DNA of 64,000 bases, taken from the IMG/VR virus record IMGVR_UViG_3300043410_001892, positions 62,001 to 126,000 of that record; one strand, 5' to 3'. Every line of letters begins with the position of its first letter. The stretch's first letter is position 1. The position numbers were made by a program, and so were the translations under genes. The notes under the pieces are model-generated. The model was not told the origin of the DNA and did no database searches. It saw only the letters and a list, made by a program, of their open reading frames with translations. Below, one piece after another: positions 30,990 through 58,117 of the stretch.

Positions 30990-31631
30990 ATGATATTTAT
31001 CAATAATAAATATACCAACATCTATTTTAATATAATCAGATCTGCACAAATACGAGAGTCATTAACTGGATATACTGAAAAACACCATATCATACCAAGG
31101 AGCTTATGCGGCTCAAATAAAAAAGATAACTTAGTTATTTTAACTGCTAGAGAACATTTTATCTGTCACTGGTTACTTACTAAAATGGTAGCAGGCGATA
31201 ATCTAAGAAAAATGAAACACGGGTTATGGAGAATGTTAGTTCAAGGTGCAACTTTTCAAATAAGATATAAACCAAATTCTCGTACATATGAAACACTAAG
31301 ATACAAATACGGATCATTACGAAAAGGAATAAAAACTTCAGATGAGGTTAAAGCAAAAATCTCAAAAGCAAATAAAGGTAGATTAAAAGGTGAAAATAAC
31401 CCAATGTACGGAAATACTCATACTGCAGAATCTAGAAAGAAGATATCAGAAAAAGCACAAGGTAGAACGCCATGGAACTTAGGTGTCACACATACTTATG
31501 AAGTAAAACAGAAAATGTCAATATTAGCATTACAAAGAACAAAATATAAATGTGAACATTGCGGTGTAGAATGTGTTAAATGTAATTATAATAGATGGCA
31601 TGGAGCAAACTGTAAATCTATCGTAAGATAA
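30990..31631 (+). mobile_element. Free-standing HNH homing endonuclease with NUMOD3 motifs
   Basis: EKHHIIPRSLCGSNKKDNLVILTAREHFICHWLL; HTAESRKKISE and NPMYG NUMOD3-type motifs; C-terminal CEHC..C..H..C. Confidence 0.9.
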
Positions 31632-33109: not shown

Positions 33110-34594
33110 ATGCAACATTTTTATGACGGTGCCATAAGACGGTACCTTACTCAAACAATTCGAGTTTTTAGTGAATTTACAGTACGATACGGTGACGGAA
33201 CGCTGCATCGTGTACCTGTCGGTTACGGTGACGGTGATCGGCAAACTACTAGTGTTATTAGACAAAATTCAGAAAACACTCTAAATTCAATACCACGTAT
33301 CAGTATATACATATATGGTCTTGATTTAGACCGAGATCGTCTTGCAGATTCAACATTTGTTAGTAAAAAAAGTATAAGAGAACGAGATATCAACGGAAAC
33401 GCTTACACTAATAATCGAGGTAGAAATTACACAATCGAACGCGTAATGCCAACCCCATTTAAATTAACTATGAAAGTTGATATTTGGTCTGCAAATACTG
33501 ATCAAAAATTACAAATTTTAGAACAAATTTTAGTGTTATTCAATCCAAGTTTAGAAATTCAGTCGACTGATAATTATATTGATTGGACGAGTATTTCTGT
33601 GTTAAATTTAGATAGTGTTGCTTGGACAAGTAGATCAGTTCCTGTAGGAAATGATAGTCCTATTGATATTGCTACATTAACAGTAGACTCACCAATATGG
33701 ATTAGTCCTCCTGTTAAAGTTAAACAACTTGGTGTTATTACTAAAGTTATTACTGGAATTACTGATGCAAATGCAGCAGGATCAACTGGATTTGGTACAG
33801 ACTATGTAGTACCTGATTATATTCAATCTGCACTGTTAACTGAAGTTATTTCGTGTGTAGAAAATTACACAATTGAAGTATTAGGAACACAAATCACATT
33901 ATACAGTTCACATGAATCAGATTTAGCAAATTACGTTTCATTTGATATGCCATCTCATAGCGAATATCCACGTAAATGGGAAGAAATATTTGAAAAATAT
34001 CCTAAAAAATTTATACCAGGAGTTACTCGTGTTTTCCTAATGCAACGCAATGGTACAGAAATTAATGGTACTGTATCACTTCATCCAACAGATGACGGTA
34101 TTTTACTAGTTGATTGGGATTATGATACATTAAATCCTAATACTGGTATTAACAGTCAAGGTTATTTAGATACCGATGATACAAGTTTGTATAATCAATC
34201 TCCGCAATATAGACCAAATAGCCCTGGAACATTTGATGCAATTATAGATCCGTTATCATATGATCCACATAGACCATTAAAAGAAAGCACAGATCAGCCT
34301 ATTCCAGTTGGTTTAAGATATTTAATAATTGAAGATATTGGTAGTGATATAAATGCCGACGGAGCAAGTGCTTGGAAATCTAATAACGGAAGTGATTTAG
34401 TTGCTCATGCTAATGATATTATTGAATGGACAGGCAGTCAATGGAATGTTGTTTTTGATTCGATACATGAAACAGATACTATGATTTGGCAAACTAATAC
34501 ATATACAGGTATACAATATCTATGGAATGGTATTTCATGGGTTAAAAGTTTTGAAGGAATTTATCCGGTGGGAAAATGGCGATTAGAACTGTAA
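33110..34594 (+). CDS. gp15: Tail terminator / sheath stabiliser (T4 gp15-like) with C-terminal extension
   Basis: FYDGAIRRYL, RVPVGYG, PRISIYIYGLDLDRDR, MPTPFKLTMKVDIWS, QILEQILVLFNP. Confidence 0.88.
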   Translation: MQHFYDGAIRRYLTQTIRVFSEFTVRYGDGTLHRVPVGYGDGDRQTTSVIRQNSENTLNSIPRISIYIYGLDLDRDRLADSTFVSKKSIRERDINGNAYTNNRGRNYTIERVMPTPFKLTMKVDIWSANTDQKLQILEQILVLFNPSLEIQSTDNYIDWTSISVLNLDSVAWTSRSVPVGNDSPIDIATLTVDSPIWISPPVKVKQLGVITKVITGITDANAAGSTGFGTDYVVPDYIQSALLTEVISCVENYTIEVLGTQITLYSSHESDLANYVSFDMPSHSEYPRKWEEIFEKYPKKFIPGVTRVFLMQRNGTEINGTVSLHPTDDGILLVDWDYDTLNPNTGINSQGYLDTDDTSLYNQSPQYRPNSPGTFDAIIDPLSYDPHRPLKESTDQPIPVGLRYLIIEDIGSDINADGASAWKSNNGSDLVAHANDIIEWTGSQWNVVFDSIHETDTMIWQTNTYTGIQYLWNGISWVKSFEGIYPVGKWRLEL

Positions 34595-35025
34595 CAGACA
34601 GTATTGTATGTAGTGGATCGTTGATTTATTCAAGATCTACTCATAGATTTTTACTCATTCAAAAGTCTTCAGGCAAACATCAAGGAACTTGGGGATTAGT
34701 AGGAGGCACAAATTTAGCCAACGAAAATCCCTGGCAGGGTCTTACCCGTGAAATTGAAGAAGAAATAGGCTTTTTACCAGACATTAAAAAAACTCTACCA
34801 TTAGAAAAATTTGTATCAAATGATAGTATTTTTAATTTTCATACATATTTTTGTTTAGTTGATAACGAATTTGTTCCAATTCTAAGTGATGAACATATTG
34901 CTTGGGGTTGGTTCAGTATGTCTGCATTACCAAAGCCAATACATCGAGGGTTAAATCTTAGTTTGCGTAATAAAATTATTCAAACTAAGATTCAAACTGT
35001 AATTGACATTATTGATAGTTTATAA
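34576..35025 (+). CDS. NUDIX hydrolase
   Basis: WGLVGG-x5-E-x7-REIEEEIG Nudix box. Confidence 0.9.
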   Translation: MAIRTVTDSIVCSGSLIYSRSTHRFLLIQKSSGKHQGTWGLVGGTNLANENPWQGLTREIEEEIGFLPDIKKTLPLEKFVSNDSIFNFHTYFCLVDNEFVPILSDEHIAWGWFSMSALPKPIHRGLNLSLRNKIIQTKIQTVIDIIDSL

Positions 35026-35943
35026 TTTTGCTTTAATATCAGCTAACATATTGTCAATTAGTCGTTTTGTTTCGTCTTCGTTAAAATCCATTGCAGTATC
35101 GTTTAGCTGATCAGCTTCAAACGACGAAAACATGTTAATTCTAATTGGACTATATCGTTTATTAAATCCTTCTTTTTCAATGATATTAAAATGATTTGGA
35201 TAAGTTACATTTTCAGCAAATGTACTTCCTAAAATTACAGTTCCCGGTGTATTAACTGCGTAAGCTAAATGTTGTCCTACACTATCACACCCTATAAAAT
35301 AATCAGCATGTTGAATAATTGAACCCCAAGTACGCAACGGAACATTTTCTGGGTGTCTTGTATATTCATTATTTGGTATTTGAAATTCTGACATACTGAT
35401 AATATTATAATACTTGCTTAATTCTTTTGCAATTGATATAAATGTAGATAAATTTAAACTTCTACTCATTGGGTCAATTACTGTATTAAGATCAGTGCAT
35501 TCTTCAGAACTGCGACCAAATGGTTGAATTACAATAGTTTTTTCTTTGTTAAACTGTTCTTTTGCTCTTAAACATGCTACTTTCCCAGTAATATCGTCTT
35601 GTTTGTTAAACATAATATTAGGTCGGTAATCAAAATCTTCTCTAATACTACCATTTATTAATTTATCAAATGCCTGTGAGATATTAATTTTTTGATTATA
35701 GTATTCATAATCAGCATACGGTTCTGGTATAATTAATTCACTACCTTTAATAATATTTTCAAATATGCCTTTAGTTGATGATTCGTACATCCTATCTTGT
35801 AATAACGGATTGCCTAATAAAAATTCAGACCCGCCATCAAGAATAATATACGAATCTGGGTTTTCAATAATAAACCGCTCTAACGCCGGAATAGCGCATA
35901 TTACTCTCCCCATACCACCGTTGATTAAAATTGTCTTTTTCAT
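35020..35943 (-). CDS. Glycosyltransferase family 9-like (heptosyltransferase fold)
   Basis: GGMGRVICAIP N-terminus, IVIQPFG, and ADYFIGCDSVGQHLAYAVNTPGTVILG C-terminal motif. Confidence 0.8.
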   Translation of the reverse strand: MKKTILINGGMGRVICAIPALERFIIENPDSYIILDGGSEFLLGNPLLQDRMYESSTKGIFENIIKGSELIIPEPYADYEYYNQKINISQAFDKLINGSIREDFDYRPNIMFNKQDDITGKVACLRAKEQFNKEKTIVIQPFGRSSEECTDLNTVIDPMSRSLNLSTFISIAKELSKYYNIISMSEFQIPNNEYTRHPENVPLRTWGSIIQHADYFIGCDSVGQHLAYAVNTPGTVILGSTFAENVTYPNHFNIIEKEGFNKRYSPIRINMFSSFEADQLNDTAMDFNEDETKRLIDNMLADIKAKL

Positions 35944-36379
35944 AAATCCTCAATTTGTTTTCATTATTTACACAGTATGATAGCAAGATATCTCTAATAT
36001 GGTTTGACCAAAATTCTGCATCTTGTGTGCTAACTCTAACATTGTAAGTTATTGGCGGTTGAAATATTTGATTAGTATTTTGGTATTTACAAAATAAACA
36101 TGTATCAACAAATACTGTAAAATCTGCATTAAATAAGTTTCTTATTTTAGCAGTAGGCGCAATAAAATCACAAATAACATATTTTGATTTAGATTCATCT
36201 GCTAATGATTTCATTCTAATGCCTTGTCGTAACCGACCTTCATCACTAAAATCCCAATCATTATAAAGTGATCGAATAGTATCACCGTTATAATATGTTG
36301 AATTTGGTAATTTTTCTATTAATTTACGAGCTAATGTAGTTTTACCGGCCCCTGATAATCCCATAATTAAAATTTTCAT
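35864..36379 (-). CDS. cysC: Adenylylsulfate (APS) kinase-like protein
   Basis: GLSGAGKTT, NGDTIR, DFSDEGRLRQ and DFIAPT mirror CysC motifs. Confidence 0.8.
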   Translation of the reverse strand: MKILIMGLSGAGKTTLARKLIEKLPNSTYYNGDTIRSLYNDWDFSDEGRLRQGIRMKSLADESKSKYVICDFIAPTAKIRNLFNADFTVFVDTCLFCKYQNTNQIFQPPITYNVRVSTQDAEFWSNHIRDILLSYCVNNENKLRIYEKDNFNQRWYGESNMRYSGVRAVYY

Positions 36380-36897
36380 ATATTAAAAAAGTCAGTAGCA
36401 CTGTTTCTAATGTTTTCGCATTTATCGTATAATGCAACATAGTCGTATCCTAACTCTTCAAATGCTTCGTGTCTAATAGCATTTTCAAAATCAGTTTTAG
36501 CCTCAACGGTATAACCCCATCGTCTATAAGCTTCTTGTCGTATTTCTAACGATTGATCATTTACTGCTTCTGGCGGATATCCAAATGTTCGATACGCAAG
36601 TCTACGAATAAAGAAAAACGGACTTTCGCAAGCTTCTAGTTTAATACCAGTAAATGCCCAATATCGCATATTATAACTTAAATCTGGATCAGGTAATGTA
36701 AATGTGTTTAAAGCCATACTTGCTTCCCATCGAATATCCGGATCTGGATCAGTTAGTGCCGCTTCTGTAAATCCGTTTGTTCGATATGCATATTCACGAA
36801 TTTGGTAATCTGGGTCGTCGTATGCTTCATCTGTTATTCCGTTTTCCTTGTAGTATTGTAGTCGTTGTTTTGTTGTTAACTCACTCATTTCTGTCAT
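36376..36897 (-). CDS. HEAT-like helical repeat protein
   Basis: About six 21-22-aa units D-x-x-x-x-I-R-x-x-A (DPDYQIREYA, DPDPDIRWEA, DQSLEIRQEA, DFENAIRHEA). Confidence 0.7.
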   Translation of the reverse strand: MTEMSELTTKQRLQYYKENGITDEAYDDPDYQIREYAYRTNGFTEAALTDPDPDIRWEASMALNTFTLPDPDLSYNMRYWAFTGIKLEACESPFFFIRRLAYRTFGYPPEAVNDQSLEIRQEAYRRWGYTVEAKTDFENAIRHEAFEELGYDYVALYDKCENIRNSATDFFNI

Positions 36898-37678
36898 AAA
36901 ATTTTCTCCAGTATTCTAAATCTGAGTATCGTTCTATAATATCATCAGGCAAAAGCATATGATTATTTATTTTGTTAACACTTGGTCGAACATCATGTAA
37001 TCCTGGTAGATTAACTTCGGCATCGCAACCGTTATCGTTAACTGTTGGAAGATTTGTAAAATCGTGTTTAAAATTTTCTATTTCTAAAAACTGATATAAT
37101 GCATTAATCTCAAATTCTGTATTTGAAACTAACGATTCATATTCTATCAAATATATAGAATGCGAATATTTTGAATGTATTGCTTGTTTTAACGCATTTA
37201 AACTATATCCAACTACACCATTCCAATCCATTAAGCATTCAGCTCTTGAATATACATTTACATATTGTGAACCATATACTTGTGAATATATTGAATACGG
37301 ATTTTTTCTGTATATAGTTTCAAACGAATTTAATATATCACATATTGAGCGTACACAGCAAATAATTTTTACATTAGGCATTGCGTTGTATAATATATCA
37401 ATGTGTCCAGCCCACATACGATTTGTATCAAAAATTATTTCATTTGGTATAGATTCATAGACTGTATCAAACACTAATTTTATAAGTTTTTGTGTATGTT
37501 CAGTAGTAACTATATGATTTGTTCCTGAATAATCAGGTTTAAGAAGTGAATCAACTAATGGCCCTACTCCTGATGTAATATTTGCATAGCATTTTGGATT
37601 CTGTGATAAGATTGACGATAATAATGTTGACCCAGATCTTGGTAATCCAGATATAAAAAAATATTGTTTGTTAGACAA
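36881..37678 (-). CDS. PAPS-dependent sulfotransferase
   Basis: 5'-PSB motif SGLPRSGSTLL, 3'-PB motif CCVRSICDILNS, IEYESL; TTG start overlapping the fibre stop. Confidence 0.9.
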   Translation of the reverse strand: MSNKQYFFISGLPRSGSTLLSSILSQNPKCYANITSGVGPLVDSLLKPDYSGTNHIVTTEHTQKLIKLVFDTVYESIPNEIIFDTNRMWAGHIDILYNAMPNVKIICCVRSICDILNSFETIYRKNPYSIYSQVYGSQYVNVYSRAECLMDWNGVVGYSLNALKQAIHSKYSHSIYLIEYESLVSNTEFEINALYQFLEIENFKHDFTNLPTVNDNGCDAEVNLPGLHDVRPSVNKINNHMLLPDDIIERYSDLEYWRKFYDRNE

Positions 37679-43967: not shown

Positions 43968-46900
43968 TTATATAATTGTTAAACTACTTATTACGCGAAC
44001 TGAAATTGTATCAGTAGCTGCTGCAGCTTGGGCAAGAATTCTTACATTTCCGCTATTAATATCACAGGTAAATGTTGCTAACATAGCACCACCTGATACT
44101 GTTGATATATCACCATATTCTACCATATATGCATTTGTTCCATTATGCAATACAAGTATTTCTGCAACTTGATATGTATTCAAATTTGATCCAGAACTTG
44201 CTGTACAATTAGCTTGTACTATGAACTTAGCACTTCTATATGTTGTCGCTGAAAATGATTTAATAGTAGTAGGAGTAGTTGTAATTCCAGTTACAACTGT
44301 ACCTTGTACTTCCAGATCAGTTTTAATTACTACTGAATTTACAAAAGTAGCAAGGCCATTCCCGTCAATTGTTAATCTTGTAGTAGCACTTTGTGTAATA
44401 TCACCTGATGTTCCAGGAGCTCCTGTTTTAATTATAAAGTTACCAGTGGTACCTGTTCCTGTTGCTAAACCTGGAGTAATTGTAAAATCACTTGCGGAAA
44501 TATTAGTTCCAACTGCATTTTCACCTTTAAGGGTTGCAGCAACTGGTGTTGCACTTGCTTCGCTACTACCTAATGTAACCGTTTTATTTCTTAATAATAA
44601 TGTATTGATTTTTTCAATAGTTCCAACACGCGGTGACGATGACAATGTAATTATTGTTGCTATTTTAACAGTAAATGACGATGATGAACTACCTGCACTT
44701 GTCACAGGCCATGTTCCGTCTAAGTTAGCAATGCCTGATGAAGCTATTGTTACTTGATCACCTGCTTTAATACCTAAACTTGTATTGGTATGTGCAAAAA
44801 CAACGGTTGTTAATGAAGTAAGATCAGTTGAAATTGCGTTGCTAAGATACACCGATGTTGCATCAATACCTGTTACAAGTGTATTTGATGGTATACCTGC
44901 TGCAGATTGAACTAATTGTCCAATTACAATTCCAGTTGTACCTGAAAATGTTAATTTTGTACTTGAGCTTGTGGCTGCTGTGAATAGAGCAAATCCAGTT
45001 CCGCCTGTATATACAGTACCAACACCTGCGACCGTGCTTAATGTAGTACCAGTATTTGCATACGTAAATGTTGTTGTATTAACTACCGTTACTACTGATA
45101 AATTTAATCCATTAAATGTTGTATTGTTACATACAATCGTAACAGTATCACCAGAAGTTAATCCATGTGCAGTTGAAGTAACAATAGTTGCAATATTGCT
45201 GCCATTTCTTGCAACAGTTGAAATTACTAATGCTGATGATATAACTGCACTAATTGAAGTTGTAGCACTACCTGATGTGGTATAATTCTTAACGATTGTA
45301 GTAAATGATCTAGTATTTGAACTTGCACCAATTACTACACTGCTTGCAGATCCACCTACATTTATTGATAATGCATTAGTGTTGAATACATTTGCAGTAC
45401 CTGTGGAAACAGTTTGTATTTCTCCAGAATTAGTTTTAACTATAGTTGCTAATGTTAATGAATCTGCCCAGTATGGCAATGAACCATTACTGCTTAAAAT
45501 TGTATTTGCTGGGCCAATTGCTAATTTACTAAGTGAAGATGCATTATTAGCATAGAGTAAATCGCCTGCTGTATAACCAGTTAAACCAGTACCACCTTTA
45601 TCTACTGGTATTGAACCAGTAAAGTTAGCTGGATCTAAGAAGTATGATGAATCATAAGTATCAAGTGTACCTGCATCAACAACACCGGCTTTAATAAACA
45701 CACGCCCAGCGGTATTTCCAGTACCAACATCAAATTGCAAGACGTTAAATTGTGCTACACCCATAGTTGAATAATCACTATTATCAGTTGGGAAAGTTGC
45801 TTTTGCAATATCCATTGTAACTGCACCGTAGTACGGTGATACACCAGTTCCGCCAAGTGTTATTATAGATGTGTTAGATTTTAAACTGGCAACAGCAGTT
45901 GCCCAAGATGAATCACCTCGTAAATATGTACTTGAATTTGCAGTTCCAGAACTTGCTAATCGACTAGTTGAAATTGTTCCAGAAACGATGTTACTTGCAT
46001 CAACACCTGATGTAGTTAAAAGTCCCCAGTTTGATAAATTTTTACCACTAGTATTTGAGAACCCAATTATTTGTACTTGATCATGAATTAACCAATAAGT
46101 GTTTGAACCGGTTGAACTAAAATCAACTGCTGCAATAGTAGAACCTGATACACTTACTAACGAATCTGCTCTATAAAAATGTAAAGTAAATGAATTAGTA
46201 GTAACTGATCCAATAAAGAATGTTTGTCTATCAGTTATTTGTATAATAGATCCAGATAACAAATAAGACGGTAACGTTGATCCTGTAATCGTTACAGCAT
46301 CACCTGTTGCTAATCCATGACTTGCAACATATATTCTGTTGTTAGTGGTATTAACTGTACTAATTGTTAAAGTGTGGCTACCTGTTGAACTTGTACCTAA
46401 TGTTACATACGTAGCACCATTGTATTCAGTTGATAATCTAAATGTATTAGCCGATAGCACTATAATATAATACGGTGTAACAATAGATAAATTACCAATT
46501 GCAGGATTTACACCTGGGCTATATATAACTGGGTCACCATTTGATAATCCATGTGAGTTAATTGTGATTATATTATTAACATAATCAACTGCTGATGCAG
46601 CATTAAATGTTTTTGTTATAGTAGTACTAACAGTTATTGGTAACCAAGAACTATTGTTATCAGTAACAAAATCTGGTGAATTTGAAGATCCAGTAAACTG
46701 CCCACCTGTCATATTATTGATATACAGTCTAGTTTCAACTGTTGATACTGTTATACTAAATCCAGAACCAACCGGTAATGATGCTGATAATGTATTGCCA
46801 ATTCCGTAACCTGTACCTGCATATACTAAATCAACTGCGGTAACTGCTCCACCTGTTACTGTAATATTTGCTAATGCGCCAGACCCTGCACCGCCTGTAA

Positions 46901-49900
46901 GTGCAACACGAGAGTAAGATCCATTAGTGTATAATGATCCACCTGATATTGTTAGATTGTTTACAACAACTACCATTCCTCTGCGCACTTCATATACTTC
47001 GCCTTGTGCTTGAGAACTTGCTGCAGTGATTACAGAATTTACAGTTCCAGTTTCAGATACTGGGGTAATAAATGTTAATGCTGCCGTGCTTGTTGATGTC
47101 ACTGACGATGTTGTTGGAAAAGTAACAGTAAAGGTACGTGGACTTGCAGACATGTTAACTGCAGAAATAATAGATCCAAGAGGTAACCCGCCACCAAACA
47201 CATAATCATTTACATTTATAGTTCCGGATAATGCAGCACTTGCTACTGTTCCAGTTGTAGTTGATGCATTTGATGCTGCATTGATAGTTGCTGTAGCAGT
47301 AGTAGTTGCTGATGCAGTAGTTGCAGTATCAGTATTTGGATAACTAAACTTCGTTGTTGTTAAAACAGTAACATACGGTGAAGTGTTATACGATGTCAAC
47401 GTGGTTGCAGTAACCTTAACTTGATTATTTGTAACTAAATTATGAGCTGCAGTTGTGATCACATAAGCAATATTGTTATATCGTATTACTGAGCTGATAG
47501 TTGCATTTGTATAGGTGTACGTACCGTTGTATGGAATTACTAAGTATTGATTAGTTGATGAATCTCTTAATACGTTTGTATCATTTGCTTCAACTGCGGC
47601 GCTAACTGCAGAACAATAAACTGAAGTATTTGTTGTGCTTGGTGTTGCATCTCCGCCAATTGTTAGTATATGTGCGCTGTTAGTATCAAATGATACGCTA
47701 AAAGTTTCATATTGACTTGCAATTACTACAGTTGTACTGTTCGTAACATCACCTTTAATGTAACCAGTTGCTCCACTTGTATCTTGTGTAACTAATGCAA
47801 AATCTAAAGCAGTAATTGGTAGGCTTAACGTAATAGTAACTGTTTGGAATTTTTCAGTACAAGTGTCGCCTGCTATAAAACTAACAGACGGAACATCTTC
47901 GTATGCAGTTAACCGTGAATGATAACCTAATCTAATAAGTGCAGTTGGTGCTCGTTGTGCCGGAATCAAATCATTATTAATTTGTCCAGCCGAGTTAAGT
48001 TGAACAACTGCACCTGGTACTGCGTTTGTGCTAACTGATTTATCAATAAATGATCCTAATCGAGTTTTAAGATAAGTCCACATAGCAAGCTGTGTGCTTA
48101 ATTTATTATTAGCTGGTCCACTGATTTCGTTTTCACCTAATCCAATATCGCTGCTAATTGCATCAATTGAAATATCACTTAATGCTAATTTTAATACATT
48201 TAACTGGCTAACTGTAACTGTATTTTTAAATACGATATTACCTGTTCTGTTGTAAGCAGTAATAAAGTTACCAACTTGGAAGTCACCTAATTCGTTAGTT
48301 CCTGATGAGTAAACTCGTCCTGCGTTCTCTTCAAATTGTTGGAAAGCAGGGTAACCTTGTCCACCGTTAACTGGTAATGCATTATAGTCAATACCAGAAC
48401 CTGCATATTCCCATGTATGACCTGATGAGTTAACAATACTTGGTCTATGGAAATAAACTTTCTTACCTGGTAATGAGTTAATATTGTTTAATGATCCATC
48501 TAACAATGATGGCATTACTGTAAATGTTGCACCATATAAGTCACTTCTTAATGTTACAGAAGTAACACTAATTGCTGGACTAAACACATCTGAACCAGCT
48601 TTAGTTATAGTTGATCCAGCTGCAAATAATTTTCTAATTGGATTGTTATAAATGGTAACAACATTGATTGCAACTACTAATGTATTTTCTCCATCAAAGC
48701 TATAAACGTTTGCACTATTTGGTTGTCCAGTTGTTACACCTTCAAGTTTTTGTCCAGGAACAAATGTATAGGTATTGTTATTAAGAACAATAGTTTGGAA
48801 TACATGATGTGTTTCTATTACATCATCAACAAATAATTCGTAGTCGTTTTTAACGATTGAATGTAAACCGGTACTAGTGCGTGTAACATTAAGTAATAAT
48901 GATAAACTATTATCATGTGCCAATTTAAATTGTGTAGTGTTCAAAAATACTACATAGTATTGGCTACCTGTAAACATACCACCAAGCGGTACTTGATTAT
49001 TTGTATTGTAAACAACCGCATCACCATTTACAAATCCATGTGGACTGCTTGTTGTGAAGATATCATTTACTATATCAATTTCAGTTGCAGCATTAAATGT
49101 CACTTCTAAGTAACTTGGTGATCTTGTTTTATAATTTGAAGTAAGATCAAGTGGTCCAAATTGTGTAGAAATATAATCAGTTACAAATGTTTTGATTGCA
49201 TCTTTATTAGTTTGTAAAATTGTACTTTGAACTACTAAATTCGTATCTTCAACCCAACCTACACCTGGTTCAAATACTGATGGTTCAGTCCCAGTGCTAA
49301 CCATTATGCGTAACTCTTCAAGTCTTGCAACAACAAATGCAGTTGCATCTACTGACCCTGGATTACCACTAATGTATTGCCCATTACCAGCTCCGTATCT
49401 TAGTGCAACATAGTTAGATATTTCAGTTTGACTTGCACCTTTATTAGAAACTAAGTTGCTGTTTTGAGTAGTTAAGTTTGAACTAACCCATGATGTACTT
49501 GGAGAAATAACAGTTGGTTCAACACCTGTACTAACCATTACACGCAATTCTTCTAAACGAGCAACTGCAAACGTAACTGCATCTGATGAAGCAGCAGTTC
49601 CACTAATTACTTGTGTTGCACTACCAGTAACTGAAGTTATATAAGTTGTAACTGCAGTTTGACTTGTTGATTTATTTGTAACTAGTGTACTATTTTGAGT
49701 AGTTAAGTTTGAACTAACCCAAGTAGTGCTAGGCGAAATAACACTTGGTTCAGTTCCGGCACTAACCATTACACGTAATTCTTCTAAACGAGCTACTGTA
49801 AAAGTAACTGCATCAGTAGAACCTGCATTTCCGCTTACTACTTGAGTTGTTACATTTCCAGTTGATTTAGTCCAAGATGTATTATTAGTTAGAATGCTTC

Positions 49901-52900
49901 CAATGATTGCTTTTAGTCTTACATAAACTGCAGTCAATGCAGTTTGTTGATCACCTACTTCAACTAGTGTGCCTGTTTGTTGATTTTTATATAATCTAGC
50001 ACATACTGCAGTTTCTAAGTTGCCACCATATACTAAATCATAACGTATGGCATCAACAATATAACCTATATCACGAGTACATAATGATTTTTGAGTTTGT
50101 GTAAACCCAGACCAAAGTGTGTTATAATTTGTGTTTAAGTACGCAGTTACTTCGTCTTGAATAAATGCTTTATTTGCATAAAGTAATCGGGCTGCATCTG
50201 AAAAACCAGTTAAAATGTTAGATGGTTCAGGCAAAACTACCGCAGGAACTACACTTAAACCATTGTTGATTATATTGATAATTGTGTTTAAACTGTTAGT
50301 AACTGATGTTGCAGCAGGTGCATATCCGCTAACTTGTGTAGCTAAGTAATCTCTCAAATAAGTAAATGCATCAACTGTGATTGCTTTTTCAGTACTTAAT
50401 AAGTTAGCTGATTGAGCAGTATAATAGCTCATACCAGCTTTAATAGATCTAAAGTTAGATCCAAACATCATATCATATCGCAACGCATCGATAACAAATC
50501 CAACATCTCGCTGACATAAAGATGAGTCATAAACAAATGCACTTGTTGTCCAAGATGTATTATTGGTTAAAATATTGCCAATAATTGCTTTTAATCTTGC
50601 GTATACCGCAGTAACAGCAGTTAGTTGGAGTGCAGGTTCAACTAATACACCAGTTTTTTGATTTTTATATAATCTAGCACATACTGAAGTTTCTAAGTTA
50701 CCGCCGTAAATTAAGTCATAACGTATGGCATCAACAATATAACCCATATCGCGCTTACATAATAATTTTTGAGCAGGTGTTAAACCTAACCAAGTTGACG
50801 TGTAGTTAGCCAGTAAATACCCACTTACTTCGTCTTGTATAAATGCCTTGTTAGCATTGATTATACGAGCTGCGTTTGAGAAACTTGCAACGATGTTAGA
50901 TGGTTCAGGTAATGTAATAGTAGGAACAGCACTTAAACCAGTATTGATAATACTAATAATAGTGTTCATATTATCAGTTACTGATGTTGCTGCAGCTGAG
51001 TAACCACTAACTTGTGCAGCAATATAATCTCTTAAGTGTGTAAATGCATCAATTGACGCAGCTTTTTCATCACCGACTACTGCAGATGCTTGGGCAGTAT
51101 AATAGCTCATACCTGCTTTAATAGATCTAAAGTTAGATCCAAACATCATATCATAACGAACTGCATCAATAATAAAACCAACATCTCGTTGACACAGTGT
51201 TGGATCATATGCAACTGATGATTTAGTCCAAGATGTATTATTAGTTAGAATATTTCCAATAATTGCTTTTAATCTTGCGTATACCGCAGTTACTGCCGCT
51301 TGTTCTGATGAATCTTCAACTAACACTCCAGTTAACTGATTTTTATATAACCGTGCTGCTACCGCAGTTTCTAAGTTGCCACCGTATATTAAGTCATACC
51401 GTATTGCATCAACAACATAGCCCATATCACGTTTACATAATGTGCGTTGATTATCAGTTAAACTAGTCCATAATGATTGGTAATTTGCATATAAGTAAGC
51501 AGTTACTTCGTCTTGAATGAACGATTTATTAGCATAAAGTAGTCGAGCTGCATCTGAAAAACCTGATAATAACGTAGGTGGTTCTGGAAGTACAGCAGTA
51601 GGAACAGCACTTAACCCATTAGTAATAATATTGATAATGGTATTCATGTTATTGACTACAGAAGTACCAGCAAGTGGGTCACCATTTACTGCGTTTGCTA
51701 TATAATCTCTTAAGAATACATACGCTGCAATGGTTGCATCTTTTTCAGATCCAATTACATTTGATGATTGTGCAGTGTAGTAACTCATACCTGCTTTAAT
51801 AGATCTAAAGTTAGATCCAAACATCATATCATATCGAATTGCATCAATAATAAAACCAACATCTCGTTGGCAGATATCAACATCATAAGTAAAGTTAGCT
51901 GTATTGCTGTATACTCGAATAATATATTGTTGTACAGGACCATCTGGTCTAGTAAAACCAATAACGGTTAACGTTTGGTTAACTCCTGAGTAACCAACTT
52001 CAGTAACAATACCTCTATCAAATGTAAATGAAGTAGGTGAAAACCCTGACGATCTAAGAGCATATATACCAAAGTTAGTAGCAGAATTAGTAATAGACGC
52101 ATAACCGCCGCTTTGTGTATACACACCATTTAATGCAAACAGTTGGAAACATGATACTAATTGAACGTAAGCTTCGTTAACAACACGCCATGCAGTACCA
52201 CCAAATAAGATCATTGTAAACGCTGCAGCAACCATTGACTTACATTGTACTGGAACAGCACCGGTTGGATTAACTTCAACCTCTAATAAGCTAACTGGAA
52301 CGTTAGGGTTAGCAATCTTTCCACCATCAATGTATGCTCCGTTACCACCTAAGAAGCTAAGAGCTGTACAGTTTTGAATATACGGTGATAATGTCATTAA
52401 TGGTTTAGTTGTAGGTAAGTTAATATACCCACTACGATCGGTGTTTGTATCAAAAACATCGTCAAATGCAACAGCATAGTCCCATGTGTATGATGCAATC
52501 CCATTTGCATCAACACCATCTCTAAATGTAAATTCAGAAAAGTAACAACCATTTCTAACTCTAAATAAGTCTTTATTTGCGTTTAATGGTCGGAAGATAC
52601 ATGAACGCAATGCTGCACCAATAACACTTACGTTATCTGGTATAATAATTGGGTTATCTTCAATATATTCACCAGCAGCTACGTTGACTACTACTCTTGT
52701 ACCGTTTGGTGCTTTTACTGAGTTGTAAACAAGTCCTGATGCAATTTGCAAACCTCGTTTAAGTGTTCTTACTGGAGAAGTAATACCGTCATTAGTATCA
52801 CTACCTTTAGTGGCTGAAACGTAAATGCAGTTACCTCCAAAGGTATCAGAGTCAGTAAATGCTAAATTTCCATTACCATCAGTTGATATTATTTGTCCTG

Positions 52901-53483
52901 CTAACCCTGTACTTGAAGGAAGTGTTAATGTATAATCAGCAGCTAAGTTAGCTGGTGATCTAAGTCCAATAAAGTTTACACCGTTAATAGTTGATTCAAA
53001 GAATTTAACTGACCCACGGTTTGTAACTGACACAGATGAAGCTGATGCATCACCTATTGTTGGTGAAATCAGTACAGGATTGTTAGAAAATACAACTTTA
53101 CCTGTGCCTGTTTCATCGGTAAGAATGCTTGCAAGTTCTTCAGATGAAGTTGCAGTAAATGCTGATAACTTATCTTCTAAGTAAGCAGCAGTGCCGCCTG
53201 TTCTAAACGTAACAGTTGAACTATCAGTACCAGAAAATGTTAAAGTATTGGTTACAGATAGAGTTTTACCACCAGTTAATGTCAAAGTTGCATCTGATGT
53301 AGGCATAGTGAATGCAATCTTATTAATAGTTGTTGCAGTTGCAATTCCTAAGTCTGGAGTAATCAATGCTGGATTAGTTGATAGAACTACCGCACCAGTA
53401 CCTGTTGAAATAGTTACACCAGTACCTCCGTGGATAACCGGAAGTGTTCCTCCTTTTAGAATGCTTGAAAGAGTTTTTGACAT
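43968..53483 (-). CDS. Giant multidomain tail fibre/spike protein (beta-helix, phycobiliprotein-like repeats, small beta modules)
   Basis: IYVSATKGSDTNDG...VAAGEYIED pectin-lyase-like start; six CxRD repeats; YY(V/I)..F(K/R)L modules; C-terminal YRSAKFIVQ..EILVLHNG..EYG domain. Confidence 0.8.
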   Translation of the reverse strand: MSKTLSSILKGGTLPVIHGGTGVTISTGTGAVVLSTNPALITPDLGIATATTINKIAFTMPTSDATLTLTGGKTLSVTNTLTFSGTDSSTVTFRTGGTAAYLEDKLSAFTATSSEELASILTDETGTGKVVFSNNPVLISPTIGDASASSVSVTNRGSVKFFESTINGVNFIGLRSPANLAADYTLTLPSSTGLAGQIISTDGNGNLAFTDSDTFGGNCIYVSATKGSDTNDGITSPVRTLKRGLQIASGLVYNSVKAPNGTRVVVNVAAGEYIEDNPIIIPDNVSVIGAALRSCIFRPLNANKDLFRVRNGCYFSEFTFRDGVDANGIASYTWDYAVAFDDVFDTNTDRSGYINLPTTKPLMTLSPYIQNCTALSFLGGNGAYIDGGKIANPNVPVSLLEVEVNPTGAVPVQCKSMVAAAFTMILFGGTAWRVVNEAYVQLVSCFQLFALNGVYTQSGGYASITNSATNFGIYALRSSGFSPTSFTFDRGIVTEVGYSGVNQTLTVIGFTRPDGPVQQYIIRVYSNTANFTYDVDICQRDVGFIIDAIRYDMMFGSNFRSIKAGMSYYTAQSSNVIGSEKDATIAAYVFLRDYIANAVNGDPLAGTSVVNNMNTIINIITNGLSAVPTAVLPEPPTLLSGFSDAARLLYANKSFIQDEVTAYLYANYQSLWTSLTDNQRTLCKRDMGYVVDAIRYDLIYGGNLETAVAARLYKNQLTGVLVEDSSEQAAVTAVYARLKAIIGNILTNNTSWTKSSVAYDPTLCQRDVGFIIDAVRYDMMFGSNFRSIKAGMSYYTAQASAVVGDEKAASIDAFTHLRDYIAAQVSGYSAAATSVTDNMNTIISIINTGLSAVPTITLPEPSNIVASFSNAARIINANKAFIQDEVSGYLLANYTSTWLGLTPAQKLLCKRDMGYIVDAIRYDLIYGGNLETSVCARLYKNQKTGVLVEPALQLTAVTAVYARLKAIIGNILTNNTSWTTSAFVYDSSLCQRDVGFVIDALRYDMMFGSNFRSIKAGMSYYTAQSANLLSTEKAITVDAFTYLRDYLATQVSGYAPAATSVTNSLNTIINIINNGLSVVPAVVLPEPSNILTGFSDAARLLYANKAFIQDEVTAYLNTNYNTLWSGFTQTQKSLCTRDIGYIVDAIRYDLVYGGNLETAVCARLYKNQQTGTLVEVGDQQTALTAVYVRLKAIIGSILTNNTSWTKSTGNVTTQVVSGNAGSTDAVTFTVARLEELRVMVSAGTEPSVISPSTTWVSSNLTTQNSTLVTNKSTSQTAVTTYITSVTGSATQVISGTAASSDAVTFAVARLEELRVMVSTGVEPTVISPSTSWVSSNLTTQNSNLVSNKGASQTEISNYVALRYGAGNGQYISGNPGSVDATAFVVARLEELRIMVSTGTEPSVFEPGVGWVEDTNLVVQSTILQTNKDAIKTFVTDYISTQFGPLDLTSNYKTRSPSYLEVTFNAATEIDIVNDIFTTSSPHGFVNGDAVVYNTNNQVPLGGMFTGSQYYVVFLNTTQFKLAHDNSLSLLLNVTRTSTGLHSIVKNDYELFVDDVIETHHVFQTIVLNNNTYTFVPGQKLEGVTTGQPNSANVYSFDGENTLVVAINVVTIYNNPIRKLFAAGSTITKAGSDVFSPAISVTSVTLRSDLYGATFTVMPSLLDGSLNNINSLPGKKVYFHRPSIVNSSGHTWEYAGSGIDYNALPVNGGQGYPAFQQFEENAGRVYSSGTNELGDFQVGNFITAYNRTGNIVFKNTVTVSQLNVLKLALSDISIDAISSDIGLGENEISGPANNKLSTQLAMWTYLKTRLGSFIDKSVSTNAVPGAVVQLNSAGQINNDLIPAQRAPTALIRLGYHSRLTAYEDVPSVSFIAGDTCTEKFQTVTITLSLPITALDFALVTQDTSGATGYIKGDVTNSTTVVIASQYETFSVSFDTNSAHILTIGGDATPSTTNTSVYCSAVSAAVEANDTNVLRDSSTNQYLVIPYNGTYTYTNATISSVIRYNNIAYVITTAAHNLVTNNQVKVTATTLTSYNTSPYVTVLTTTKFSYPNTDTATTASATTTATATINAASNASTTTGTVASAALSGTINVNDYVFGGGLPLGSIISAVNMSASPRTFTVTFPTTSSVTSTSTAALTFITPVSETGTVNSVITAASSQAQGEVYEVRRGMVVVVNNLTISGGSLYTNGSYSRVALTGGAGSGALANITVTGGAVTAVDLVYAGTGYGIGNTLSASLPVGSGFSITVSTVETRLYINNMTGGQFTGSSNSPDFVTDNNSSWLPITVSTTITKTFNAASAVDYVNNIITINSHGLSNGDPVIYSPGVNPAIGNLSIVTPYYIIVLSANTFRLSTEYNGATYVTLGTSSTGSHTLTISTVNTTNNRIYVASHGLATGDAVTITGSTLPSYLLSGSIIQITDRQTFFIGSVTTNSFTLHFYRADSLVSVSGSTIAAVDFSSTGSNTYWLIHDQVQIIGFSNTSGKNLSNWGLLTTSGVDASNIVSGTISTSRLASSGTANSSTYLRGDSSWATAVASLKSNTSIITLGGTGVSPYYGAVTMDIAKATFPTDNSDYSTMGVAQFNVLQFDVGTGNTAGRVFIKAGVVDAGTLDTYDSSYFLDPANFTGSIPVDKGGTGLTGYTAGDLLYANNASSLSKLAIGPANTILSSNGSLPYWADSLTLATIVKTNSGEIQTVSTGTANVFNTNALSINVGGSASSVVIGASSNTRSFTTIVKNYTTSGSATTSISAVISSALVISTVARNGSNIATIVTSTAHGLTSGDTVTIVCNNTTFNGLNLSVVTVVNTTTFTYANTGTTLSTVAGVGTVYTGGTGFALFTAATSSSTKLTFSGTTGIVIGQLVQSAAGIPSNTLVTGIDATSVYLSNAISTDLTSLTTVVFAHTNTSLGIKAGDQVTIASSGIANLDGTWPVTSAGSSSSSFTVKIATIITLSSSPRVGTIEKINTLLLRNKTVTLGSSEASATPVAATLKGENAVGTNISASDFTITPGLATGTGTTGNFIIKTGAPGTSGDITQSATTRLTIDGNGLATFVNSVVIKTDLEVQGTVVTGITTTPTTIKSFSATTYRSAKFIVQANCTASSGSNLNTYQVAEILVLHNGTNAYMVEYGDISTVSGGAMLATFTCDINSGNVRILAQAAAATDTISVRVISSLTII
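49140..51890 (-). repeat. Three 678-bp (226-aa) A+B repeats followed by three 77-78-aa repeats
   Basis: CxRD anchors at 51861/51183/50505 (A) and 51426/50748/50070 (B); ARLEELR anchors at 49777/49546/49312. Confidence 0.92.
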
Positions 53484-56941: not shown

Positions 56942-58117
56942 TTAGCTAAATTTAACACTTGTATGTGTGATACCAACACGACCTAAGTAGTCAGCAGCGT
57001 TACCCAAAGATGACGCAGTGTTAGAAAGTTCAACATAACCATAACGTGTCATGAACGATACAACTGGTTCAAATGTTGATGGATCAAGTACAACACCTGA
57101 TGACATCAATGGAATATATGGACAGTAGAATGCAGGTGCATCTGATTCTGAACCACCTTTGTAACCAATTAAGATTGAAGTATTGTCTGTAGCATAGCTG
57201 TTTACATATACTTTTAATGAGTTGTTTAAAGTACCAACGAATTTTGTATTAGTTGGAGCTTCAAATGTACCTTCAGTTGTACGAGCAAATGCTGAAGTTG
57301 TAGCAGATTGCAAAATAGTTAATGCAAATGGAGATACAACAGCATAGTTACCAGCACCACGACGTGTACGTTGTGCAATCAAGTTGCTTACACGGTTGAT
57401 TTGAACAGCTAATGCAGCGTGTTCGTCACCTACGAATGTAGCAGTACCTGATACTGCAGATTGATTGTATGTTTCAACATCTGATCCAGCCAATGTTAAT
57501 AATGAAGCGATAATTTCTTGATCGATCTCAGCGGTAATTTCTTGAGCCAAAGCAGCCATAATTTCTGCTTCAACGTCAATACCTTGTTGTGCTTGCGCAT
57601 CTTGAGCAGATTCAAATGTCCAGCGAGCTGACAACTTACGTGTTTTAGCTTCAACTGTTTGTTTCAAGATTTGAATGCTCATTTTTTTACCAGCTTGTCC
57701 TTCTAAAGTTGCAGTTGACGTAGCTTTTGCTGCGTTTGCATTTTCATTACCTGAATATGCTTCTGCAATTTTGAATGGGCTTAACGCTTCTTCGCCTGCT
57801 AATACACCTGCTCCAGTGCTTGTGTCTGCATAACGAACGCGCAATGTGTGGATTTGACCAACAGGACCAGTCATCGGTTGTACCCCAACCAATTCGTTAG
57901 CGATAACGGTTGGCATAACACGACGGATTACTGGTAAAATCACGCGGTTTAAAGTTGCAACGTTGCCAGCAGATGTAGCACCAGCAGTTGGACTTTCCAT
58001 CAAATACTTACGTGTATTTTCAAGTGTTACGCCCATTACTGATTTTTTTGTACCTTGCAAGCCTTCTAAAAGAGCTTGTTTTGTTTCTGCCCAACGGCCA
58101 TTAAGTAGTTCTGACAT
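56942..58117 (-). CDS. gp23: Major capsid protein
   Basis: VIRRVMPTVIANELVGVQPMTGPVGQIHTLR, VEAKTRKLSARWT, AFYCPYIPL, FMTRYG. Confidence 0.98.
   Translation of the reverse strand: MSELLNGRWAETKQALLEGLQGTKKSVMGVTLENTRKYLMESPTAGATSAGNVATLNRVILPVIRRVMPTVIANELVGVQPMTGPVGQIHTLRVRYADTSTGAGVLAGEEALSPFKIAEAYSGNENANAAKATSTATLEGQAGKKMSIQILKQTVEAKTRKLSARWTFESAQDAQAQQGIDVEAEIMAALAQEITAEIDQEIIASLLTLAGSDVETYNQSAVSGTATFVGDEHAALAVQINRVSNLIAQRTRRGAGNYAVVSPFALTILQSATTSAFARTTEGTFEAPTNTKFVGTLNNSLKVYVNSYATDNTSILIGYKGGSESDAPAFYCPYIPLMSSGVVLDPSTFEPVVSFMTRYGYVELSNTASSLGNAADYLGRVGITHTSVKFS

Follow-up and report, generated by a model that had tools for sequence, protein, structure and literature searches.

Why would the tail fibre of a phage carry tandem copies of a helical module, the larger half of which looks like a trimmed version of the light-harvesting phycobiliproteins (PBPs) of cyanobacteria and keeps their pigment-attachment Cys-x-Arg-Asp motif? 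The question arises from a stretch of 64,000 nucleotides (hereafter the window; positions 62,001 to 126,000 of IMG/VR record IMGVR_UViG_3300043410_001892) of an uncultured jumbo myovirus, in which a single ORF at 43968-53483 (-) encodes a protein of 3171 aa. The protein matches the PHROG families phrog_5342 (tail fiber, E 3.9e-199) and phrog_4527 (short tail fiber, E 1.3e-51) and lies in a myovirus structural gene cluster among portal, major head, sheath, fibre and other structural genes, which identifies it as a giant virion protein of the fibre type. The DNA shows no similarity to cultured phages by blastn, and Pfam, NCBIfam and PDB sequence searches with the N-terminal 535 aa and the C-terminal 1955 aa of the protein returned nothing usable.

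A preliminary description based on the letters alone had reported six PBP-like domains arranged as three alternating A/B pairs, and as an observation this is confirmed. The pattern C.RD.G[FY]..DA.RYD...G.N matches the translation exactly six times, with type A at residues 538, 764 and 990 and type B at residues 683, 909 and 1135, both series with an exact period of 226 aa or 678 bp. On the DNA level three copies are spaced 678 and 678 bp start to start with 76-86% identity, while the three modules are about 71% identical as proteins. The spacing from A to B is 145 aa and from B to A 81 aa, so that the length of about 158 aa initially given for the second unit is wrong. The gapless match to phycocyanin alpha around Cys84 is also real, as HMMER aligns kCaRDigyylrmityclvaGGt with lCkRDmGyivDAirYDliyGGn.

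The array of three modules extends over 49851-51899 (-), residues about 529-1211. The A units are located at 51600-51899 (-), 50922-51221 (-) and 50244-50543 (-), with the codons of Cys538, Cys764 and Cys990 at 51870-51872, 51192-51194 and 50514-50516, respectively. The B units are located at 51207-51599 (-), 50529-50921 (-) and 49851-50243 (-), with the codons of Cys683, Cys909 and Cys1135 at 51435-51437, 50757-50759 and 50079-50081. An AlphaFold model of one module is all-helical (pLDDT 90.2, pTM 0.84), with a four-helix A domain of roughly 95 aa, a Pro-rich linker and a six-helix B domain of roughly 110 aa. Directly after the array, at 49134-49849 (-), follows a second repeat of about 77 aa in two clear copies plus a diverged third read from the translation; TRF reports a period of 231 at 49424-49849 with 81% matches, and the repeat was also recovered by a separate repeat search.

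Are these units indeed related to PBPs? For the B units several approaches agree. While a single-sequence phmmer search against PDB returned only C-phycocyanin alpha (E 0.13), a profile of 47 modules improved this about 100-fold (E 0.0014), with nearly all of its 72 hits being PBPs of several subfamilies, although a spurious coiled-coil hit, a spike S2 fragment, scored E 0.004 in the same search. Alignment of B units with a PBP alignment by hhalign gave 91.6% probability (P 8.3e-7) over 57 columns equal to PBP positions 39-104. Reciprocally, a PBP profile scored 82 units at 10 bits or more in 150 related giant proteins, the best reaching 23.5 bits (29.6 bits when the unit is excised) and spanning PBP positions 43-163, whereas reversed decoys reached at most 1.4 bits and shuffled decoys at most 3.9 bits. 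In the window protein this profile picked exactly the six motif sites as its six best domains, with residues 644-702 of the first B unit at 11.7 bits, the second B unit at 9.6 bits and residues 1113-1154 of the third at 14.0 bits, though in these copies the sequence match covers only the helix B and E equivalents. The second B unit modelled alone gave a confident AlphaFold prediction of six helices (pLDDT 93.0, pTM 0.85), and the top 50 Foldseek hits in PDB are all PBPs or the PBP-derived smURFP (TMq 0.5-0.66, probability 0.95-1.0), with no ordinary globins or other bundles among them; the Foldseek E-values are, however, only 0.06-0.27.

The units are nevertheless not canonical PBPs. Neither the whole protein nor any of the six units hits Pfam PF00502, even at E <= 10, and there is no NCBIfam hit either. 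The N-terminal X-Y hairpin is missing, as PBP positions 1-38 are never aligned, and the Arg93 position holds Asp in 78-85% of units. Asp13 and Arg93, invariant in the PBP alignment, pair the alpha with the beta subunit and do not contact the pigment. Nor are the six domains equivalent. The A units are truncated paralogues of B which share a 74-aa three-helix core with them (hhalign 99.8%) and match PBPs only over the 23-residue motif (68.9%).

The interpretation in the preliminary description is thus partly supported. Of the conditions named beforehand as counting against it, a predicted fold that is not globin-like, the absence of a PBP profile hit and poor conservation of the Cys, none clearly applies, the Cys being conserved in 93-94% of about 1580 units of relatives. 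The suggested resemblance to an (alpha-beta)3 arrangement, on the other hand, fails, as the X-Y hairpin and the Asp13/Arg93 pair that build alpha-beta monomers are missing, units are fused in tandem arrays of 2-34 and B units in relatives mostly occur without an A partner (691 B-only against 287 A+B). A protein search with the B-unit profile, which at that database size cannot reach PBPs, found only five small stand-alone proteins. Binding of haem, also considered initially, is unlikely, as no column has a conserved His (not more than 17% in the module alignment and not more than 11% in the survey of about 1580 units).

Among described systems, the PBP alpha and beta subunits (C-phycocyanin alpha, e.g. 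PDB 1i7y_A and 4f0t_A) share with the B unit the all-helical globin-like core, in our case predicted, and the Cys-x-Arg-Asp on helix E together with Tyr(+13) and Gly(+18). They differ in that identity is about 15-20%, the C-terminal half is shorter in the window's copies and the phage units are embedded as tandem repeats in virion proteins of 1-6 thousand aa rather than being 160-180-aa antenna subunits. The best size-normalized structural match is smURFP (PDB 7uqa, 6fzn; TMt 0.54-0.58, rmsd 3.7-4.8 A), similarly compact with about 131 aa, which is an engineered dimeric fluorescent allophycocyanin alpha and not a natural repeat domain; smURFP attaches biliverdin to its Cys without a lyase, which is a precedent for autocatalytic loading. 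The bilin biosynthesis-associated globins (BBAGs) of heterotrophic bacteria are distant PBP paralogues outside cyanobacterial antennae that self-assemble with bilins; they are stand-alone proteins encoded next to pre-PcyA and haem oxygenase genes (PMC10151467). The same repeat module in the same kind of protein, next to baseplate genes, is found in the giant fibre and baseplate proteins of T4-like cyanophages, such as Syn9 gp101 ('putative fiber', 6076 aa), P-HM2 PHM2_086 and PHM2_096 and S-PM2 Q5GQW5 (PHROG 4527 and 5342). These are annotated only as tail, fibre or structural proteins, and we found no annotation or paper which calls the repeat PBP-like.

What, then, is the module for? Our analyses establish that three tandem 226-aa modules, all-helical in the predicted structure and each with two paralogous domains, are encoded within the fibre protein; that the B domain is, by sequence profile and predicted fold, a trimmed PBP-type globin domain with the equivalents of helices A/B, E, F and G, which keeps on helix E the Cys84-x-Arg86-Asp87 chromophore triad plus Tyr97 and Gly102; that the A domain appears to keep only the E-F-G-like core and to add one more helix; and that the module is the signature repeat of a large family of giant virion proteins in T4-like cyanophages and many uncultured aquatic phages. 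Any binding of a pigment, on the other hand, is inferred. In the mechanism we tentatively favour, although we hold it to be no more than a possibility, the domains would form an exposed beads-on-a-string section of the fibre, each keeping the ancestral ligand pocket and binding a linear tetrapyrrole through the conserved Cys. The bilin would be made in the infected cell by host or phage haem oxygenase and bilin reductase and be attached autocatalytically, as in BBAGs and smURFP, or with the aid of a phage CpeT-type lyase, so that the fibre would be pigment-bearing and possibly light-responsive.

In favour of this view, Arg(+2) is conserved in 94% and Asp(+3) in 98% of the about 1580 units, with the full triad intact in 1432 units and present in all six units of the window, while the PBP residues lost are those of subunit assembly. 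Where Cys is replaced, the commonest substitute is Phe, and Tyr is frequent, which hints at free space next to the Cys, and as B units mostly occur alone an A-B disulfide cannot explain the conserved Cys. All 159 cultured-phage records with the module are cyanophages, and only cyanomyoviruses carry ho, pcyA, pebS and cpeT (PMC10452541). On the other hand, the most conserved residues of the family, Asp(+14) at 99% and Tyr(+30) at 97%, together with Asp(+9) in place of Arg93, are not PBP features; they make helix E acidic, which fits a structural or cation-binding role as well as a pigment role. A tblastn search with the P-HM2 FDBR and CpeT and an Acaryochloris lyase and HO fragment gave only noise and no haem oxygenase, bilin reductase or lyase relative in the 64-kb window, which leaves out roughly 300 kb of the source contig. 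A weak HEAT-repeat hit at 36376-36897 (23.2 bits against a cutoff of 23.5; HEAT_2 E 0.005), considered as a possible E/F-type lyase, was rejected as too weak. None of 120 viral loci with a haem-oxygenase motif, a partial sample in which absence of the window's contig is uninformative, has a module within the flanks retrieved. The window's capsid protein is closest to jumbo phages of heterotrophs, and a degenerate DNA pattern search of genome contigs gave 19 loci, about the number expected by chance, of which eleven (in 9 contigs) hold real modules, all in MAG contigs and none in cyanobacteria. Bilin supply is therefore uncertain, and we found no report of pigmented virions.

Almost equally possible, and equally tentative, is that the domain is PBP-homologous but chromophore-free, the array being a rigid helical spacer or a weak adhesion section of the fibre in which Cys-Arg-Asp together with the family-specific Asp(+9), Asp(+14), Asn(+20) and Tyr(+30) would form a buried polar network needed only for folding. 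Besides the strong conservation of Asp(+14) and Tyr(+30) (97-98%), which are not PBP pocket residues, this would agree with the small residues at +10 (Ala, Ser or Gly, about 94%) and Gly at +18 on the same helix face as Cys and Asp, a pattern typical of tight helix packing, and with units that lose the Cys usually keeping Arg and Asp (SRD, TRD, ARD). Arrays of 2-34 units look like shaft repeats, there is no linkage to bilin genes in the loci searched and some hosts are possibly non-cyanobacterial. However, 93-94% conservation of a lone Cys in an extracellular protein at about 30% overall identity is unusual for a purely structural residue, the residues retained from PBPs are the pigment-contacting ones, and bulky Phe and Tyr are tolerated at the Cys position.

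Less likely, the Cys and the acidic helix would serve other chemistry, with or without PBP ancestry, such as inter-chain disulfides that lock a multimeric fibre or binding of metal or Ca2+ by the Asp-rich face. Asp at +3, +9 and +14 and Asn at +20 are 78-99% conserved, and virion fibres are often stabilized by ions or disulfides. But only one Cys is conserved per unit and B units often stand alone, so that intramodule pairing cannot be the general rule; there is no His or second Cys to complete a typical metal site, and no reason is given why exactly the C-x-R-D spacing of PBPs would be kept. That a generic helical bundle without common ancestry happens to carry a short motif resembling helix E of phycocyanin is the least likely alternative, as, despite the lack of hits to curated models, Foldseek E-values above 0.05 and only about 57 aligned columns in the window's copies, sequence profile, profile-profile comparison, reciprocal profile with decoys and predicted fold all single out PBPs from whole-PDB backgrounds and some family members align across helices B to H.

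A more far-reaching reading, which we consider unlikely although it is not excluded, is that virion fibres of cyanomyoviruses and related aquatic jumbo phages carry covalently bound bilins on arrays of PBP-derived domains, the fibre then being a phage-borne pigment protein or photoreceptor. This would give a molecular basis for the unexplained light-dependent adsorption of phages such as S-PM2 and P-HM2, both of which carry the module (PMC6628666), and would provide an acceptor for the 'enigmatic' haem oxygenase, bilin reductase and CpeT genes of phages, including phages of non-photosynthetic hosts (PMC11480375).

PBPs are known as antenna subunits of cyanobacteria and algae, and only recently were the BBAGs found as distant bilin-binding relatives in heterotrophs. 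A third branch, fused in long arrays into phage virion fibres and keeping the pigment-attachment triad, of which we found no prior description, would widen the evolutionary picture of this fold; the branch is large, with 905 representative proteins at E <= 1e-3, each with up to 29 matched stretches. It makes directly testable why adsorption of some cyanomyoviruses is light-dependent yet independent of host photosynthesis, and what phage-encoded bilin synthesis and lyase genes serve. Even if the domains turn out to be chromophore-free, the result gives a structural annotation to the commonest repeat of the largest and least understood cyanophage structural proteins.

The three-module array (window 49851-51899) lies inside a single ORF at window 43968-53483 on the minus strand, which encodes a protein of 3171 aa. 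A regular-expression scan of its translation finds the motif C.RD.G[FY]..DA.RYD...G.N exactly six times, with type A (CQRDVGF...MMFGSN) at residues 538, 764 and 990 and type B (C[KT]RD[MI]GY...[IV]YGGN) at residues 683, 909 and 1135, so that both series follow a period of 226 aa or 678 bp. A repeat search at the DNA level confirms three copies spaced 678 and 678 nt apart with 76-86% identity. The observation in the preliminary description is thereby confirmed, with the exception of the length of about 158 aa given for the second unit, which is an error, as the A-to-B distance is 145 aa and the B-to-A distance is 81 aa. Directly following the array at window 49134-49849 (-), residues about 1217-1450, a second tandem repeat of about 77 aa (231 bp; core ...ARLEELRVMVS.G.EP...) is found in two clear copies and a diverged third. 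As module alignments of relatives often end in a similar '...T..GN' lead-in, the two repeats may travel together.

The protein matches the PHROG tail-fibre families phrog_5342 (E 3.9e-199) and phrog_4527 (E 1.3e-51) and is located between other fibre and structural genes and the head genes of a myovirus, namely portal, major head and sheath. The window is part of the 372-kb IMG/VR contig IMGVR_UViG_3300043410_001892 (100% identity). The major capsid protein (window 56942-58117, -) is 66-70% identical to those of jumbo phages of heterotrophs (Sinorhizobium Phosso, Vibrio 2.275.O, Pseudomonas PA5oct), and the source is therefore an uncultured jumbo myovirus of unknown host with about 35% G+C. 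Within the structural gene cluster, a NUMOD3-motif protein (E 4.9e-19), probably a homing endonuclease, is encoded on the opposite strand (window 30990-31631, +) next to a T4 gp15-like tail sheath stabiliser (33110-34594) and a NUDIX hydrolase (34576-35025). Just downstream of the fibre genes, at window 35864-37678 (-) and 35020-35943 (-), a sulfotransferase (Sulfotransfer_3, E 7e-18), an APS-kinase-like P-loop protein (E 1.4e-9) and a weak glycosyltransferase-9-like ORF could together form a sulfation cassette acting on a glycan or on a virion or host surface component.

The repeat is widespread. A HMMER scan of 1.84 billion representative proteins with one A/B module found 905 proteins at E <= 1e-3 and 310 at E <= 1e-30, most of which are 1-6 thousand aa long with up to 29 matched stretches. 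Among 50,697 cultured-phage records, tblastn hits 159 records, all of them cyanophages (Synechococcus 138, Cyanophage 16, Prochlorococcus 4, Marine 1), which are annotated as short tail fibre, tail protein or structural protein. Examples are Syn9 gp101, a 6076-aa 'putative fiber' next to the gp10-like baseplate gene, and P-HM2 PHM2_086 and PHM2_096. This distribution contrasts with the affiliation of the major capsid protein in the window, a mismatch relevant to guessing the host. A degenerate DNA pattern scan of 185,579 reference genomes found real modules only on MAG contigs binned as Rhodobacteraceae, Yoonia, Crocinitomicaceae, Chitinophagales, Acidimicrobiaceae and Gammaproteobacteria, while none was in cyanobacterial genomes. 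These contigs, with module-rich giant ORFs at loci L099 (Rhodobacteraceae bin), L087/L090/L101 (Crocinitomicaceae MAG), L091/L096 (Chitinophagales MAG), L097 (Acidimicrobiaceae MAG), L089 and L103, are either mis-binned phage contigs, which is probable, or a hint that the family also occurs in phages of heterotrophs. The family is thus phage-borne and may extend beyond cyanophages.

To resolve the anatomy of the module, 47 non-redundant modules from the window and from 79 viral loci were aligned. AlphaFold on this alignment gives a confident all-helical model (pLDDT 90.2, pTM 0.84) with helices at 7-27, which carries the A motif, 31-41, 53-70 and 75-94, a Pro-rich linker at 95-111, and helices at 112-123, 125-139, 141-145, 149-172, which carries the B motif, 176-183 and 197-218. 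A comparison of the A-unit with the B-unit alignment by hhalign gives 99.8% probability over 74 columns, with A 1-74 matching B 43-116. A and B are therefore paralogues sharing a three-helix core, to which B adds two N-terminal helices and A one C-terminal helix. In 150 related proteins, B-only matches (691) outnumber A+B (287) and A-only (163) matches, and the proteins carry 2-34 units with a median of 9, so that the A/B pair is one arrangement among several and not an obligatory heterodimer analogue.

With respect to the relationship to phycobiliproteins (PBPs), the curated models do not recognize the domain, as there is no PF00502 or any other meaningful Pfam hit for the protein or for single units at E <= 10 and no NCBIfam hit. 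Four other tests, however, all point to PBPs. First, phmmer of the 687-aa array against all PDB sequences returns only C-phycocyanin alpha chains (E 0.13-0.25), aligned at Cys84. A profile of the 47 modules improves this to E 0.0014 and returns 72 hits at E <= 10, nearly all of which are PBPs of several subfamilies (phycocyanin alpha and beta, phycoerythrin alpha, phycoerythrocyanin beta and allophycocyanin-type subunits), with profile positions 115-172 aligned to PBP residues 36-104. As one unrelated coiled-coil fragment (spike S2) scores E 0.004 in the same list, this test alone is not decisive. Second, a PBP reference alignment was built from cpcA/B and cpeA/B genes on four cyanobacterial plasmids, against which hhalign gives a probability of 91.6% (P 8.3e-7, 57 columns aligned) for the B units, 85.7% (P 5.5e-6, 51 columns) for the whole module and 68.9% (P 4.5e-5, 23 columns) for the A units.

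Third, the PBP profile searched reciprocally against the 150 giant proteins gives 82 domains at 10 bits or more with a best of 23.5 bits, while reversed copies reach at most 1.4 bits and window-shuffled copies at most 3.9 bits. Excised best units score 24-30 bits and align across PBP positions 43-163, that is helices B to H. Some family members (P0104 residues 1474-1593, P0144 723-846 and P0001 4661-4781), which align over nearly the whole globin domain including a C-terminal ...Y.D..I... helix, may be closer to the ancestral, complete form of the domain than the copies in the window. In the window protein, the six best domains of the profile are exactly the six motif sites, with 9.6-14.0 bits for B units and -2.6 to 1.3 bits for A units. 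Fourth, an AlphaFold model of one B unit (pLDDT 93.0, pTM 0.85) searched with Foldseek against 350,542 PDB chains returns PBPs, or the PBP-derived smURFP, in all 50 top places with TMq 0.5-0.66 and probability 0.95-1.0, although the E-values are only 0.06-0.27. The two-domain model gave the same family at the top with lower TM, and no ordinary globins or other bundles intrude. Cumulatively, it is concluded with good confidence that the B unit is a divergent, trimmed homologue of the phycobiliprotein globin domain, and the A unit a further-reduced paralogue.

Conservation was assessed over about 1580 units from 150 representative proteins. Relative to the motif Cys, which is itself conserved in 93-94%, Tyr at -5 is conserved in 80-87%, Arg at +2 in 94%, Asp at +3 in 98%, Gly at +5 in 77%, Asp at +9 in 78%, Asp at +14 in 99%, Gly at +18 in 73%, Asn at +20 in 80-81% and Tyr at +30 in 97-98% of units, and the C-R-D triad is intact in 1432 units. 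The invariant helix-E residues in the PBP alignment are Cys84, Arg86, Asp87, Arg93, Tyr97 and Gly102, of which the phage family keeps five and replaces Arg93 with Asp. In PBPs, Cys84 carries the bilin and Arg86 and Asp87 contact its propionate and pyrrole nitrogens, while Arg93 pairs with Asp13 of the X-Y hairpin of the partner subunit, a hairpin that the phage domain lacks. What was kept is therefore the pigment-contacting set, and what was lost is the assembly set. Several points cut the other way, as the most conserved residues of the family itself, Asp(+14) and Tyr(+30), have no PBP counterpart, the helix face carrying Cys and Asp also carries small residues, which is typical of tight packing, and loss of Cys is not coupled to loss of Arg or Asp. 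No column has a conserved His, so that a haem-type globin site is unlikely.

The interpretation in the preliminary description is partly supported. The predicted PBP-like fold and the conserved Cys hold for the B units, while the proposals of six equal domains, of 158-aa units, of an analogy to an (alpha-beta)3 arrangement and of haem binding do not hold. The domain is not a member of the canonical PBP family, from which it departs in the absence of a Pfam match, of the X-Y hairpin and of the subunit architecture, and it is best described as a new, phage-borne version of that fold.

While the array and the conservation of its residues are directly shown by the sequences, the presence of a chromophore is solely inferred. 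In the tentatively favoured mechanism, each domain would keep a ligand pocket and bind a bilin through the Cys. This view rests on the conservation pattern, on the precedent of self-attaching PBP relatives and on the context. Among those relatives are the BBAGs (PMC10151467); smURFP provides a further precedent. As to the context, the module occurs among cultured phages only in cyanophages, with the named examples checked being myoviruses, and only cyanomyoviruses carry ho, pcyA, pebS and cpeT (PMC10452541). Against this mechanism, no bilin or lyase gene was found in the 64-kb window, no module lies within the flanks of the 120 viral loci examined that carry a haem-oxygenase motif, and the host may be non-cyanobacterial. 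A 173-aa ORF at window 36376-36897 (-) shows a borderline HEAT-repeat hit (23.2 bits against a cutoff of 23.5; HEAT_2 E 0.005), but although E/F-type phycobiliprotein lyases are HEAT-repeat proteins, this single 20-residue repeat is too weak to interpret. In Prochlorococcus phage P-HM2 (19862-28591), cpeT, coding for a T-type bilin lyase homologue, is located immediately upstream of a YadA-domain protein and two tail fibre genes, yet these particular fibre genes carry no PBP-like module; the modules are in PHM2_086 and PHM2_096 farther along the genome. Literature searches found no report of pigmented virions or of this domain assignment. The main rival, a chromophore-free structural or adhesive bead in which the triad was co-opted for folding, is considered almost as likely, while disulfide or metal chemistry and pure convergence are less likely.

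Two open questions are touched by these findings. Adsorption of S-PM2, P-HM1 and P-HM2 needs light, but does not depend on host photosynthesis. S-PM2 has a structurally matching protein (Q5GQW5) and P-HM2 has units in two giant baseplate or fibre proteins, whereby presence of the module in these phages is a fulfilled prerequisite and not a test of the hypothesis. Separately, the purpose of hemO plus bilin-reductase cassettes in phages of non-photosynthetic hosts is 'still enigmatic' (PMC11480375). A fibre-borne bilin acceptor, which is a hypothesis only, would address both questions.
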